A stretch of DNA of 63,915 bases, counting the filler, from Perkinsus chesapeaki ATCC PRA-425 (taxonomy: Eukaryota > Protista > Perkinsozoa): NCBI GenBank assembly GCA_013115145.1. It is 7 parts of 7 records of this genome, joined end to end, with 100 filler letters (N's around TTAATTAATTAA, not from the genome) between each part and the next. Parts side by side here need not be neighbours in the genome. Positions count along the whole stretch, not along the records: positions 61,308 to 62,425 come from JAAPAO010002188.1; 6 more parts are not named here. One strand, 5' to 3'. Positions within the stretch are counted from its first letter, which is position 1. Each line of letters starts with the position of its first letter. The notes under the pieces were generated by a model. That model was not told the origin of the DNA, did not search any database, and was given only the letters and a program-made list of their open reading frames with translations. The translations under genes were made by a program, and so were the position numbers. Shown in pieces: positions 3,885-62,425 of this stretch.

Positions 3885-6280
3885 CTAAGGAAGCTGTACG
3901 TACGAATCTCCGCGCAAGTATCCAACATTCACGCCCCCACATAATCCCCACAAACCTACTTCGACAGTATATCCATACCACTCATCATCACTGCATATGA
4001 GCTCGACGTCATGCTCATCAGGCCAAGGCCATCAGATAGCAGCCACGCAACCGGATACAGAGACCAAGTCACCACTGTGAGATCTGCTATCAAACGGAAC
4101 CTGAATGCCGACCTTACTCGTCGAATTTTTCAACGCAAAATTTCCTCGCCCCAAAACAGTCGACAACTACTACAGGTACATTCGCCAAATGCTGCAAAAA
4201 CTGTGATTCGTCCGCCCGAATTTCAGTGGTAAAATAACAATATCAAGATCGAACTCCACTCGCCCACCTTCCCGCTAGTTCTCTATCTCCATAGCTCTTG
4301 CTGACATCTCTTAACCGATACCCAATATACCATATCAACGGCACCACACCCAGCCCCAAACTTATCGAATATAACGCAACCTTGGCCCACATGGGAGAGG
4401 ACAGAAATAGGGAACCTGAAGACCACCTTGGGAGGGGAAGTAAAAAATGAAAAAATAATGAATGGAAATCAATGTCTTTTACTTTTAATGAGCTTGATGA
4501 AATGCTACTTGAGTAAATTCATTTGTTTACTAACAAAATTTCGGATTGTCAAATGATAGGAACCATCCATCATGAACATCGATAAATTTAACAAAAACAA
4601 CAGCAACGATGATCGAGAAAAATAACAGAAAAAATAACAGAAGAAAATAACAGAAAAAATAACAGAAAAAATAAGAGAAGAAAATAAGAGAAAAAATAAG
4701 AGAAAAAAATAAGAGAAAAAAAACAGAAAAAATGATAGGGGAAAAGGGAATTATTAGTGAACTAGCTTTTCGTAAATATATTTCTTGGTTCAGTCCAGAT
4801 AATGAGATTCTACCCGCAAATCCGATCCCATAAAGTACATACTCATTATTTCCGAATCACGCAGAAGCCGTGAATACACTATCATTGTTATCGTTAATGC
4901 GTCCCATGTTGAATCTAGTATCACTTGCCTTCCCACTTACCAAACTCCCCACCAATCCATATACCATTTGCCACTATAGCAGGCACCACAGCCTTCAGGC
5001 CAGCACCACTCATAAAGCCAGCGTTCACCAACATCAGGGACGAACTAAACGCACAACTCTGAGAGATCAGCCAATCTATCCCCTAGTTGTTCCAGAAAGC
5101 ATTGAAACTTGCCATCCAGCTAAAAGTCTTTGAGATGGACGGAAAGTTTCAGTTTTCTTTGGGTCAAAGAGGACGATATATATCCGAAGCAGTGGCGAGG
5201 CACGGACGACCAATCAATGTTTTTCCTCTTGGTGGAGTGCCATTTTCTCTAACCACACTTCCGACTCATTTCCCCCTCCGCCACAAAGAAGGCTACACAA
5301 CTCCTTCGCACTACCAACTGCCATATCATCACGAGATCGTCCCCAATCTTTCTCGAAATAGATCATCACCACGACTGAACCCGATATGGTAAGACAAACT
5401 AGGCCAGCAACCATTTCAGTGTAGTCCCGAGCAAGCACAAATCCATCCCCCCATATATCACAACTATACAGGCAAGAGATAGGACAGAACAAACTGTAGT
5501 AAATATCCCCACAGCAACAACAACAACAGCTGCCTGACGACTTAAAAAGTGAAATACCTCCCTGCGCCGAAAAGGCATCCGAAATACCCAGTTAATATCA
5601 ATAAGCCGCCGGAAAGGGAGGCAGTGACAACCTTTGAAAAACTTATTACCACAACTTCAGCTACTCTACCAAAATGCGACAAGTCGCCGGTGCGTTTTTT
5701 ACTACTTTTTTCCTGGACCATCACGCCCATTCGAGTTACTCGGGAAGAGATATATTATTACCTCGTAAACCACTCTACATATTTCACCGGGATTATTGAC
5801 ACCACATGATGGCCGAGCAACGATGTACCAGTGAAGACGGGGAACAGGGAGAACAACTAATAACATAAATATAGCACAGTCATGAATATCCAAGCTTCAT
5901 GCGTGCACCCAATAAGTAATTGCCTATACACGGAAAACCTTCAATCTATAACTTGTACCAAATCAAATGACTCTCACACTTCAAAATAACGGATCACAAT
6001 ATTAGAAAATATCCAAGCTTCAAGCGTGCACCATATAATTTATCATCCCAGCTTCCCAGCGCACTGATTTCTTTAACAAACTTTATTTACATAATATCCT
6101 GTCCTGATACCCCCTCTATTACCTGTGCCAGATACCCAAGGGCCGTGGTGCCTGTTACGGCGGCAGCTACATAGTACACCGGCCTACCACTGCCGACTGG
6201 TACTGATCTTCCTCGTCGAATGAAGCCAAGTGATGCTGATAATGAAAAACATACAGAGATAATAATACCAACGGCGGACC
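3885..6280 (-). CDS. Type-1 (microbial) rhodopsin-like 7-TM protein; exons 6280-6123, 5856-5762, 5044-4941, 4415-4268, 4100-~3885; 5' exon and exact 3' end unresolved
   Basis: Phase-compatible GT-AG splicing gives helix B RPVYYVAAAVTGTTALGYLAQ; helix C/D PVKYVEWFTSSSLMLVN...AIVANGIWIGG (gapless vs bacteriorhodopsin RYADWLFTTPLLLLD...ADGIMIG); helix E KVALYSISLG; helix F TVVTWSLYPVAWLLSDGLG (BR TVVLWSAYPVVWLIGSEGAG); helix G MDILSK (BR LDVSAK). TAG follows the Lys codon; adding one A gives KVGLWGL, ending at 3885. Confidence 0.8.
4600..4735. repeat. Low-complexity tandem repeat (AAAAATAACAG / AAAAATAAGAG) inside a rhodopsin intron
   Basis: About 9 near-identical ~11-13-bp units read directly. 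Confidence 0.85.
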
Positions 6281-9500: not shown

Positions 9501-10352
9501 GCAGAATTTTCGCGTTAGATTACCAAATTCCAGATTGGATTCAAAAACTGTTGCCGAAAATGCAGGTAGGATCCGCAAGATCGATTGCGTGATCACTTTT
9601 GAGTTAGGGATATGCAATGGAAGACACCACTGTCGATTTAAAAAATAAAAAATTAACTGCTGTCGGTCGGAATCTCTCCTTCAGTAAGCCCGAGGGGAAG
9701 TTGAGGCGGTTTTTATTTCCAATCTCTAGGTAAGATATGCCAATCTCGTGAAGTTATAACGTACGAGCAGGACCCTAACGATCCATCGTAAGTTCGTTAA
9801 CAGCTTCTTGTTTAGATAACGATATTACCCGGGTATATGATGATAGTACCCGGATTCTGGAAGTATTTTTTATAAGTGTTTGTGGACTATGTTTGGAAAT
9901 TGAACGAACTCCCGATCGTTAGCATGTTGTCATATTACGTTAATAGGTATAATTTTCAAAATTATTTACATGACAATTAATATATGAGAAGTAAACTCTG
10001 CCATATCTACGTCATCCATACGGTTAATATGAAACTTGCTGTAGAAAACTCAAGTCCTGTAACGAGGAACTGCATTCTGTAATGTGGATCAATATAAACG
10101 AAATTGATCTCTAAATCGAAGCAGTCTCATACTGTGCGGAAATACGCAGTATCTTGTTAGCACATTCTATAGTGTAGTATATAGTATAGAACCTAGTAAG
10201 TTGTATATAGTACTACCTGTACAGTATACAATCTGTGTAATACGAAGTGGTAAAAATGAGGAATTTGAATCTCTTAAATAATTCACATTGTAATATGTTG
10301 TAGATGTCATCCTGTTTTTTGTTGTTGTTAGTAAAACTATCTATACCCAGCG

Positions 10353-11298
10353 TATGAGTTATTCGATCAATGGCATTGGTGCAGTTCTTGGTCGTAAAGC
10401 GGAGAGGGCAGCAACTGACTTCTCAGCTAAGAAGGCTCAAGCCGGTAAGCATTTCTTGTCTAATAGACGACTGCGTCTAACTCATGTCCATGTCGGGTTT
10501 CATTATAGAAAAGTGCGGTTCTGAAAGACTGCAGGAACTCTATATCGCAGGTATTCAGAATTCGATAGTAGGGTATTAGTCGATATTAATATCCATAGTA
10601 TTCTGGGTCGTTATACACTAACCCTAATAAACCAATGGTTTATTAGGGTTTAAATGAATGGTTAAAACCATACCTGTATACGCATGGCGTATTGCAGAAG
10701 CATCATTTTTCTGGGACCAATATGAGATCCAAGAGCCTTAATTAGGACTTGGGGAAGCACTCGTCGGCTAGGATCGGTCAGGATTTCGCGAAGTTGAGCG
10801 ATTGTCCTGATGTCTCTGGTTATCTCAGGCGATGCTGTTATGACTAAGCGTATTGACAGCTTGGCCGCCACCGATTGGAGAAATGATACGACAACTTGGA
10901 GACAGAATGTGAGTTGTAGAGTTGATCTAACTAATGGTGCTTCCGTATTTTACATTTCTGGATTAATAATCATTTTAATAGCCGTGTTCATATGGATGCA
11001 AGCGATCGTCATCTGGCTTATCTTTGTATATTTCTTAGATAGTTGGTATGCTCAATCTGGCTGTCTCCCATGGACGTCTCACAGCGTCACAGGCATCGGA
11101 TCAGCTCAGAGCGGCTCAGGCTAGATTGATGCGAGCAGCGGGGGATCCGATGGTGGCGAGACTTGGACGAAATGCAGTAAGGGGTCCGTTCAGCACATTT
11201 TCCCGCGTACTTCCCGCTGAAATCTGCTATACTGTGTTGTTATTCAAGTACCTTTCTTGAGCGCTGAGAACCGAAATTTTCAGTTGGACGGAGCAAGC
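10353..11298 (+). CDS. Small hypothetical multi-exon protein
   Basis: Open segments bounded by GT/AG: MSYSINGIGAVLGRKAERAATDFSAKKAQA, GDAVMTKRIDSLAATDWRNDTTTWRQN, IVGMLNLAVSHGRLTASQASDQLRAAQARLMRAAGDPMVARLGRNA. No family recognised; ends approximate. Confidence 0.4.
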
Positions 11299-12109
11299 TA
11301 GCGAGAAGAAATCTCCGGTTCTTCGTGGAGTTAGTCTGCGAATTCATTGAAGTTTTTCATTCGTTGCCGAAGTTGGGTAAAGTAAAGAAGAATTAGTACT
11401 GGAATGGCTTCCATAAACTATTCCTGTATAGTTCCGAGAGCGTCACCTCAGGGAGTCTTGTGTAGGACAGATCGGACCATGTTGTGATTTCAGAATTTAT
11501 TTATAGTTGTCTAACTTTCAAGGTTCGTTGTGAAGATATTCCCGATGATTCGTCACAATCGATCAGCAGGAGCACTGTAGATTCTATCATACCAGAATGT
11601 CCAGATTTCACAGGTGCCATATAGCACCACTCCATTCACTGCCGCTGTTTCTGTCACTCTATATTAGAGTTGACCACCACTGTACTATGATGATGTTTCT
11701 TCGAGCACTGTTAGTCAATTGTTAGTGTCTTTGTCAATCTATTGGGAGCACGTTACGTGGCAAGCTTGGGGAGTGCACACTGCTATTATGCTTTTTCTTC
11801 TTATCGTTCCTCGGGCAGGGCACGGCCTACAAGTCCCTACAGCCGCCGATGCGATCTCTGCGAATGGCGATGTCGTGTTCAGCAGCTAAATCTCAGCTGA
11901 TCATTTCAACGGAGTTGACCACTCCTTTTACAGAGATCATGAATTTTCAATAGTAGTGAATTTTATCTTCTCGTTTGTAGAAGCCCAAATGCAAGGGCAA
12001 ATTCGCATGTTTTCTGAGTCGGCTTAATCCCACGCTCGCAAGCGTTGCTGTTATCAATATCAAGTCGTACTGTGCAAACTGATCAGTTAGCGAACAAGGC
12101 TTATTAGTG

Positions 12110-60207: not shown

Positions 60208-61308
60208 TCCAGCTGCTATAACGACATTGGTATTGCACGCAGACCACGAGTGAAGCAATACACATTTAACCTTCCAAAGGCTAGACTTACTGGATAGCTG
60301 CGCAACAACAACAACAATCTTGGGTATCGTTTTCTACGATTTTTTATCACTCTTCAACGCAGTCGGTTGCAGTTCTGGATAGTTTTTGAGATCCCCATTG
60401 AGAATTGTGTTGTGAAATGGGAGAGGCTCTTATGCATTTCGTTTCGCTTCGGCGCACACTCGAGGAAGATGTATTTGTTCGAGAAATCCTGACGTTCGCG
60501 TAGTTCCTCATCAATGACTACACTATTCGTGGTATGAAGTTTATGTCAGAAGTTTCACTACTGAAACGTAACACCTTGCGGACGTAATGGAAACTTGATA
60601 ACTTCCATGATACTTGCTAAAGACAATCGCAAACCTTTGTCATACAGCAGCGATATATTGCCGTTCAGCCGCATGCCGCTCATTTGGAGTGGCGTATGGG
60701 AGTGCCAAAGAAGTATTTCTACTATTTTCCTAACACGTGGCACGCCAAAGGATGAAGGACTGCTCACTGCACAGCCATGGGTGCGCCTATTCTCGGCGCT
60801 GCAGGGTTTCACCTGTAACAGTTATACTAGCCGGTCACTGGGAACGGCGTTTTGGCTGCGTCGCCAAATCTTCCGGTAGAATTTCGGTCATCTGCGATTG
60901 AAGGAACCTGTTGATATTAACATTCAGAGTTTATTGAGTTATTAACCAACTTCAAGTTGATATAAAAAGTAGTCCCGACACCTCGGAGATGCTCCAGTTG
61001 CAAACCGCCGCCGAAGTATCTAGATAAAATCTATGCTGTCGTCTATGGCCTATCTTAGCAGCACTCACTTGATATAATGGCGAGCCACCGGTAGTCCGAA
61101 ACCCCCTGCCGCTTTAGGCATCTGCAGCTCTGAGCTCCACGGCGAACAGCTCTGTGTTATATTCTCGACTGGGTCGTAAGAGCTGCAAGCAATATATTTC
61201 ATCGATGNNNNNNNNNNNNNNNNNNNNNNNNNNNNNNNNNNNNNNNNNNNNTTAATTAATTAANNNNNNNNNNNNNNNNNNNNNNNNNNNNNNNNNNNNN
61301 NNNNNNNT

Positions 61309-61407
<99 letters not shown>

Positions 61408-61579
61408 TTAGTGTTTTTCGGAGATACGAGAATGATGCGAAAACTTCATCTCGGCGGGCATGCTCGTGGAGGTAGATTTTCTGATGGAAAAAGAGTAAAA
61501 TGAGTGGATAATGAAAACAATGTTCATCGGAGAACTGGTGTTCACGGAATGGAAGCCTGAGTTATATATGAATAAGGAT

Positions 61580-61595
61580 GGCGTCGAAAAACGCC
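61580..61595 (-). promoter_or_regulatory. Histone-type 3' stem-loop downstream of H1
   Basis: Minus strand GGCGTT-TTTC-GACGCC (6-bp stem, 4-nt loop), 55 nt after the stop codon. Confidence 0.7.
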
Positions 61596-61650
61596 TTGCA
61601 ATGCTTGTAAGGACTACAAGAAGATACCACCACTATACAGAGGAGGCATT

Positions 61651-62148
61651 TTACTTCTTGGTGGAGCGCTTTGTGGCCGCCTTCTTGGTCGTGGTCTTTT
61701 TGACCTTGGGGGCAGCAGGCTTCTTTGCTGCCTTTTTACCGGTCGACTTCTTACTGCCAGGAGCTTTCTTGGGCTTGGAAGAAACCTTCTTAGCCTTGGG
61801 GGCTGCCGGTTTCTTCGCAACCTTCTTCGCCGAGGCCTTCTTGGTGGACTTCTTCTTGGTAGCGGTCGGCTTGGACTTCTTCGCTGCAGCCGGTTTCTTT
61901 TCTACAACCCTCTGTCCGGCAGCCAGCTTGTAGGAAGCCTTAGCTTGGCTCACGTGGCCAGCGTCAACAAGGGACTTCAGAGCCTTGTTAAGAGCGGTTT
62001 TGTTCTCGACTCCGTAGTTCTGCTTGATGAAACTGAGGATGGCTTGACGGCTCATCTTCTGGAATCCCTTGCATGTGGTCAAGGCCTGTCTGACCATGGC
62101 AGAGTAGTTCGGGTGACCAGCTGATTTGGCACTAGCTTTTACAGTCAT
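61651..62148 (-). CDS. H1: Linker histone H1 with H15 winged-helix globular domain and Lys/Ala/Pro-rich tail; intronless
   Basis: HPNYSAMVRQAL...SRQAILSFIKQNY...LNKALKSLVDAGHVSQAKASYKL followed by a KKPAAPKAKK-type tail. Confidence 0.92.
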   Translation of the reverse strand: MTVKASAKSAGHPNYSAMVRQALTTCKGFQKMSRQAILSFIKQNYGVENKTALNKALKSLVDAGHVSQAKASYKLAAGQRVVEKKPAAAKKSKPTATKKKSTKKASAKKVAKKPAAPKAKKVSSKPKKAPGSKKSTGKKAAKKPAAPKVKKTTTKKAATKRSTKK

Positions 62149-62301
62149 TACGTTATAAGTCGGGAAAAGACTATTAGTAGGTAAGGATGGTGGCTAGGAC
62201 AGAATTTCACCTCGCACCACTAAATGTCACTTCTGAAAGAAAAACCGTAAAATAGGACAATCCCCAGAATTCGAACGATTCACGAAAATAAATGTCAAGA
62301 T

Positions 62302-62317
62302 GGCGTTGAGGAACGCC
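62302..62317 (-). promoter_or_regulatory. Histone-type 3' stem-loop downstream of H2B
   Basis: Minus strand GGCGTT-CCTC-AACGCC (6-bp stem, 4-nt loop), 37 nt after the stop codon. Confidence 0.7.
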
Positions 62318-62354
62318 TTGAAATTGTCAATAGCTCATTGAGGAGTACAAGAAC

Positions 62355-62425
62355 TTAGGCGGAAGTGAACTTGGTCACAGCCTTAGTTCCCTCACTGACA
62401 GCGTGCTTAGCGAGTTCGCCGGGCA
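62355..62425 (-). CDS. H2B: Histone H2B, C-terminal fragment (rest lost in gap)
   Basis: Translates to PGELAKHAVSEGTKAVTKFTSA*, the near-invariant H2B C-terminus. Confidence 0.93.

Follow-up and report, generated by a model that had tools for sequence, protein, structure and literature searches.

A putative histone 3' stem-loop with a genus-specific stem in Perkinsus chesapeaki and its relatives

Do the clustered histone genes of Perkinsus, a genus of oyster and clam parasites, carry the kind of 3' hairpin that marks replication-dependent histone mRNAs in animals? Animals have clustered, stem-loop-bearing, replication-dependent histone genes on the one hand and dispersed, polyadenylated, replication-independent ones on the other. 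The question is raised by a window of 63,915 nt of P. chesapeaki DNA (the whole stretch that was analysed, along which positions are counted here), in which the 3' untranslated regions (UTRs) of an H2B gene and an H1 gene each contain a small hairpin. An initial annotation of the window read these two hairpins as a histone-mRNA 3' stem-loop with a lineage-specific stem.

Both hairpins lie on one piece of the window (61308-62425), which is the whole of contig JAAPAO010002188.1 (1118 nt) of the P. chesapeaki assembly GCA_013115145.1. The contig contains the 3' end of H2B, H1, and the 5' end of H4, all three on the minus strand. The H2B coding sequence (62355..62425), cut by the contig edge, retains its last 22 codons and a TAA stop (62355-62357), and its translation matches the C-terminus of P. 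olseni H2B at every residue. The linker histone H1 gene is a complete open reading frame of 165 aa (61651..62148, stop 61651-61653), whose product matched the Pfam Linker_histone family (E 2e-13) and shared 93% identity with P. olseni H1 across the globular domain and 51% with an H1 variant of P. marinus. The H4 coding sequence is represented by its first 31 codons (61308..61401, ATG 61399-61401), also cut by the contig edge, with a translation identical to Perkinsus H4. The closest relatives of the contig were P. olseni and P. marinus. Because its H1 is 93% identical to that of P. olseni and JAAPAO is P. chesapeaki (PMC11513098), the contig can be assigned to Perkinsus and not to a host, in agreement with the earlier argument against animal-host contamination. 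Two DNA runs of the organism have contigs that cover the piece (61308-62425) at k-mer depths in the thousands, which fits a tandem histone array of high copy number. Several polymorphic positions were seen across the piece in the DNA runs, none of them within either stem. All sequencing runs that contain the sequence were DNA runs, and the piece had no coverage in two runs of the species that may be RNA.

Both hairpins are encoded on the minus strand. In the H2B 3' UTR the hairpin reads CAA GGCGUU CCUC AACGCC AUC (62299..62320, stem 62302-62317), and in the H1 3' UTR it reads CAA GGCGUU UUUC GACGCC AUC (61577..61598, stem 61580-61595). Recomputed from the stop codons, their distances were 37 nt past the H2B stop and 55 nt past the H1 stop, the same values as given initially. 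The pattern common to both is CAA-GGCGUU-NNNN-RACGCC-AUC, with a 6-bp stem, a 4-nt loop, and identical flanks, and folding reproduced this form for each copy, with -8.6 kcal/mol per 42-nt context for both hairpins (z = -3.6 and -2.1). The A-to-G difference between the H2B and H1 copies turns the top pair of the H1 hairpin into a U-G wobble, and pairing is kept, as had been annotated. When up to two mismatches were allowed, the hairpin pattern occurred twice in the contig and in none of 200 dinucleotide-preserving shuffles. On the piece, the Rfam Histone3 family (RF00032) matched the H1 hairpin with 22.0 bits (E 0.0025) and the H2B hairpin with 19.9 bits (E 0.016). A covariance model of the Perkinsus copies (R1, see below) scored the H1 hairpin at 49.7 bits (L001 821-860) and the H2B hairpin at 48.2 bits (L001 99-138). 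Downstream of either hairpin, no AAUAAA was present on the sense strand in the window.

The two UTRs had been described as otherwise unrelated, and this held for all but a 13-nt stretch upstream of the hairpins. The stretch, UUCUUGUA[C/G]UCCU in mRNA sense (61610-61622 and 62341-62353), is identical at 12 of 13 positions in the 3' UTRs of H1 and H2B. It was not visible in the H2B UTR of P. olseni, and the likeness is possibly due to chance. Two other signals at the hairpins were set aside. A bacterial-style terminator scan re-found the H1 hairpin, a kind of scan that is irrelevant for a eukaryote, and a match to SNORD109A that overlapped the H2B hairpin on the plus strand was rejected as noise (15.7 bits, E 5.8).

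The comparison set consisted of 28 further Perkinsus loci, obtained by exact look-up of H1, H2A, H2B, H3, and H4 proteins in at least four P. olseni assemblies, P. marinus GCA_000006405.1, P. chesapeaki, and a single Logan contig that is almost identical to P. marinus. In the P. olseni histone array, the genes are on the same strand in the order H3, H2A, H2B, H1, H4, with which the gene order in the window agrees. Hairpin presence was counted for the recovered clustered histone genes that had 80 nt or more of sequence downstream, a total of 41 genes from three Perkinsus species. The hairpin was located 35-59 nt past the stop codon in every case (9/9 H1, 4/4 H2A, 9/9 H2B, 11/11 H3, and 8/8 cluster H4 genes), and it always had a GG-initiated, 6-bp/4-nt form followed by AUC. 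The scan of histone loci therefore extended the pair of the window to H2A, H3, and H4, and the lack of the motif at these three classes, named initially as counter-evidence, was not observed. Copies from P. marinus were recovered after H1, H2A, H3, and H4, with the stem GGCGUU as in the window and GGUGUU in the case of H4.

The covariance model R1 was built from an alignment of 18 distinct copies (A1). In 142.6 kb, searched on both strands, it found 37 sites with scores of 37-52 bits, and the next best match had 16 bits. All 37 sites were on the histone sense strand, directly after a histone gene or, once, a gene fragment. The Rfam Histone3 model matched these hairpins and nothing else in the loci that it scanned, with 16.5-25.5 bits for all Perkinsus copies scanned, compared with a gathering score of 34. 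A metagenome scan for environmental relatives with the 22-nt motif yielded 120 single matches. These were rejected as chance matches, being on GC-rich (median 63%), prokaryote-like contigs without histone genes.

Some peculiarities of the P. olseni loci were also observed. In one assembly, the last H3 codons and the H3 3' UTR hairpin follow ~20 nt past an H1 stop (L006 1148-1263), a junction that reflects either a chimeric assembly of the repeat or a true rearrangement of the array unit. In the gene models deposited for P. olseni, the neighbours H2A and H2B, or H1 and H4, are fused (L002 2914-3943 and 4157-5141; L005 1-533 and 747-1779), an example being the 247-aa 'Core component of nucleosome' P0002. 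The fused models look like annotation errors arising from the tight same-strand spacing of the genes. The terminal H4 of a P. olseni array departs from H4 past codon 92 into unrelated sequence (L002 5117-5141), which is probably an array boundary or a truncated terminal copy.

The 18 distinct copies could be aligned without gaps, with the consensus CA(A/C) GGYGUU NYUY RRCRYC AUC. Within the hairpin and its flanks, the 5' CA, the stem bases G1, G2, G4, U5, and U6, the third loop base (U), and the 3' AUC were invariant. The invariant G at the second stem base corresponds to column 12 of the alignment. The first loop base varied (A, U, C, or G), and the 5' flank was either CAA or CAC. All stem cells of the 18 copies were paired (108/108), and when the pairing register was slid by 1-3 columns on the 3' arm, pairing fell to 23-69%. 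The cluster H4 stem of P. olseni and P. marinus, GGUGUU/AACACC, carries a compensatory change from C-G to U-A at pair 3, while the H2A stem of the same two species, GGCGUU/GGCGCC, contains two U-G pairs. In total, 13 of the 108 stem cells were G-U or U-G wobbles, which on the antisense strand would become C-A mismatches. P. marinus also has a duplicated piece of the H4 3' end, which comprises the last ~21 codons with changes (L024 361-492). Its hairpin, GGUGCU AUUC AGCACC (L024 453-492), shows a second double change, from U-A to C-G, with pairing kept in what is apparently a gene fragment. The covariation evidence amounts to few independent events, and the three species are closely related. 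At the level of sequence comparison, these patterns demonstrate selection on the element as a sense-strand RNA structure.

Not all histone genes of Perkinsus are followed by the hairpin. It was missing from seven solitary H4 genes, two of them at L012 and one each at L011, L013, L014, L016, and L018 (six loci in all). Six of the seven genes encode a protein identical to that of the cluster H4 genes. The solitary H4 genes are at about 5001-5312 in most of these loci, and several adjoin a 2OG-Fe(II) oxygenase gene. The hairpin was also missing from a convergent pair of an H1-variant and an H3-variant gene (L003 and L004, about 10001-11620). As far as the recovered loci demonstrate, the hairpin is specific to the 3' UTRs of clustered histone genes. 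From their clustering and by analogy with the animal split, we infer that the clustered genes are replication-dependent, and by the same analogy the solitary H4 and the H1/H3 variant genes are likely to be replication-independent copies. A different, wobble-rich 6-bp/4-nt hairpin is common to the two solitary H4 genes that lie in tandem in P. marinus, 82-99 nt past their stops (L012, stops at 5310 and 6783). The two copies, GCUGUU UUUU GAUGGC and GUUGUU UCCU GACAGC, differ at three stem positions, all of which preserve pairing. They have neither the second-position G nor the CAA and AUC flanks, and were matched neither by R1 nor by Rfam Histone3. This hairpin may be a relic or a product of chance.

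We consider it very probable that the window hairpins are the P. chesapeaki form of the 3' stem-loop that replication-dependent histone mRNAs carry, an SLBP-type signal with a genus-specific stem. The main claim of the initial annotation, a histone-mRNA 3' stem-loop with a lineage-specific stem, is borne out by the occurrence of the hairpin after all five histone classes in three species, by the complete pairing of its stems, and by the invariant G at the second stem position. This base, G7, is the only one contacted specifically by SLBP, the protein that binds the stem-loop (PMC10388802), and all 18 aligned Perkinsus copies satisfy the G7 requirement. Under the proposed mechanism, an SLBP orthologue would bind the hairpin, and cleavage of the pre-mRNA would fall a few nucleotides past the stem on its 3' side, in or immediately after the conserved AUC. 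Cleavage would yield mRNAs without poly(A), and the cluster histone mRNAs would be processed, translated, and degraded in step with S phase. Ordinary polyadenylated mRNAs would be expected from the solitary H4 and H1/H3 variant genes, which have no hairpin. A k-mer comparison of the 80 nt past the hairpins revealed no purine-rich downstream element, in that no 6-8-mer was common to all classes. Because no such element is common to all classes, U7 may not direct the cleavage here, unlike in animals. Rfam U7 had no match in the Perkinsus loci scanned with Rfam. Counted against the SLBP-type reading are the Rfam scores below the gathering score, the variable first loop base, the AUC flank, and the lack of a common downstream element.

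A second motif accompanies the clustered genes on their 5' side. In the window, a T-tract followed by TCAGAA is located ~85 nt upstream of the H1 ATG (62231..62253, minus strand), and a T-tract followed by CATCAGAA is located ~80 nt upstream of the H4 ATG (61479..61501, minus strand), the two forming direct repeat D7. In its general form, a T-tract and then (C/T)(A/T)TCAG(A/T)(A/T), the motif is upstream of the ATG by 69-84 nt in most clustered histone genes of the three Perkinsus species (also seen at L002, L005, L010, L019, L020, and L022-L029), and it was absent before the solitary H4 and the H1/H3 variant genes. Of 78 overlapping matches to the pattern, 54 were within the 40-120 nt before a histone ATG, a zone that makes up 1.7% of the sequence. 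The motif is a candidate for either a spliced-leader acceptor or a histone-specific initiator or promoter element. Perkinsus uses spliced-leader trans-splicing (PMC3101222), and the array could be transcribed as one long precursor from which mRNAs are freed by cleavage after the hairpin, coupled to spliced-leader trans-splicing at the T-tract/CAG motif. The acceptor would then lie ~70-100 nt past a hairpin and 69-84 nt before the next ATG. Were this so, histone genes would have their own equivalent of the trypanosome system, in which polyadenylation is coupled to trans-splicing, and it would operate with no U7-type downstream element. We regard the long precursor as doubtful and speculative.

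The hairpin could instead be a conserved stability or translation element, possibly acting through SLBP, that does not define the 3' end, in which case poly(A) would be added downstream or a polycistron would be resolved by trans-splicing. The genes of the array are packed on the same strand with only about 200-260 nt from a hairpin to the next ATG, a layout that would suit such an element, as would the lack of a purine-rich downstream element common to the classes. A stem-loop and poly(A) can reportedly occur on one histone mRNA, such cases being said to have been described by Davila Lopez and Samuelsson in 2008. The T-tract and CAG before most clustered ATGs resemble a trans-splice acceptor, in a genus that trans-splices with a spliced leader (PMC3101222). 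However, the AUC directly 3' of the stem and the spacing of 35-59 nt from the stop fit the layout of a histone stem-loop that forms 3' ends, and the window has no sense-strand AAUAAA after either hairpin. The existence of hairpin-less paralogues also speaks against a purely regulatory role, as in animals such a split separates non-polyadenylated from polyadenylated mRNAs. We consider a regulatory element of this kind unlikely.

Palindromes might also act as DNA in a tandem array, as sites of recombination or gene conversion or as protein-binding sites. The high copy number of the array, with its k-mer depth in the thousands in two DNA runs, and the P. olseni contig that joins an H1 stop to an H3 3' tail near the hairpin (L006) could be taken in favour of this explanation. 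The details of the hairpin point elsewhere: the 13 wobbles among 108 stem cells pair in the sense-strand RNA only, and the flanks are asymmetric (CAA on the 5' side, AUC on the 3' side), and for these reasons we regard the hairpin as an RNA element and not a DNA palindrome. Likewise, all 37 sites are in the sense orientation of the upstream gene, and the compensatory change in H4 preserves pairing, not sequence. A function as DNA is highly improbable on these grounds. As for a chance likeness of two short inverted repeats, the motif is indeed short, and a 22-nt pattern does arise by chance in very large, prokaryote-rich metagenome collections. This explanation is nevertheless refuted by the absence of matches in the 200 shuffles and by the conservation of the motif after 41 histone genes in three species, and its remaining probability is negligible. 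An SLBP-type 3' stem-loop is the reading that we retain.

The metazoan stem-loop (RF00032, consensus CCAAA GGCUCU UUUA AGAGCC ACC) has the same architecture as the Perkinsus hairpin, a 6-bp stem and a 4-nt loop, and about ten of the sixteen hairpin positions are common to both. As in metazoans, the Perkinsus copies are a few tens of nucleotides past the stop and are present on all five histone classes, and neither the solitary H4 copies nor the H1/H3 variant locus has the hairpin. The stem has GGC at its start and GCC at its end, its second base is an invariant G, its top pair is U-A, and the third loop base is U; A residues directly precede the stem on the 5' side, and one A directly follows it on the 3' side. 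The determinants in animals are a U at loop positions 1 and 3, an A-rich 5' flank, and an ACC(C)A 3' flank. Perkinsus differs in having G-U and not pyrimidine-C at stem positions 4-5, top pairs that may be U-G, a variable first loop base, a 3' flank of AUC and not ACC(C)A, and a 5' flank of CAA or CAC and not AAA. It also differs in that no recognisable purine-rich downstream element was found and in its Rfam scores (16.5-25.5 vs 34 bits). Every Perkinsus copy scores below the Rfam gathering score, and therefore surveys with RF00032 at its default threshold call the genus negative. Such false negatives would be remedied by the genus consensus or by model R1.

A 3' stem-loop signal of this kind is already reported for the genus. 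According to the 2019 review of Gornik et al. (PMC6723414), where Gornik et al. (2012, Curr Biol) is cited, histone mRNAs of P. marinus carry 3' stem-loops and those of dinoflagellates do not; no Perkinsus SLBP is reported in that review. The P. marinus stem-loops are the same element in the same genus, and the window adds the sister species P. chesapeaki. What is added here is the genus consensus, the covariation in H4, the wobbles that pair on the sense strand only, and the contrast with hairpin-less paralogues. The hairpin separates clustered from solitary H4 genes that encode an identical protein, which provides a handle on S-phase-coupled histone supply in a shellfish parasite. Among protozoa more widely, 214 of 310 species were found to have stem-loops downstream of their histone genes, often with a diverged sequence and the 6-bp/4-nt shape kept (bioRxiv 10.64898/2026.10.14.759114); Perkinsus is not named in the text of that preprint. 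In several of the protist groups described there the stem-loops are more distant and less conserved, whereas the Perkinsus copies are near the stop and very uniform.

A further comparison is with the dinoflagellates, the sister lineage, which are related alveolates and, like Perkinsus, use spliced-leader trans-splicing. Their histone mRNAs are reported to be without a 3' stem-loop, polyadenylated, and trans-spliced (PMC6723414), whereas Perkinsus keeps the ancestral hairpin, and the loss of the hairpin can therefore be placed on the dinoflagellate branch. The dinoflagellates are nearly free of histones, and their sister lineage Perkinsus retains an intact replication-type histone set marked by a 3' hairpin.
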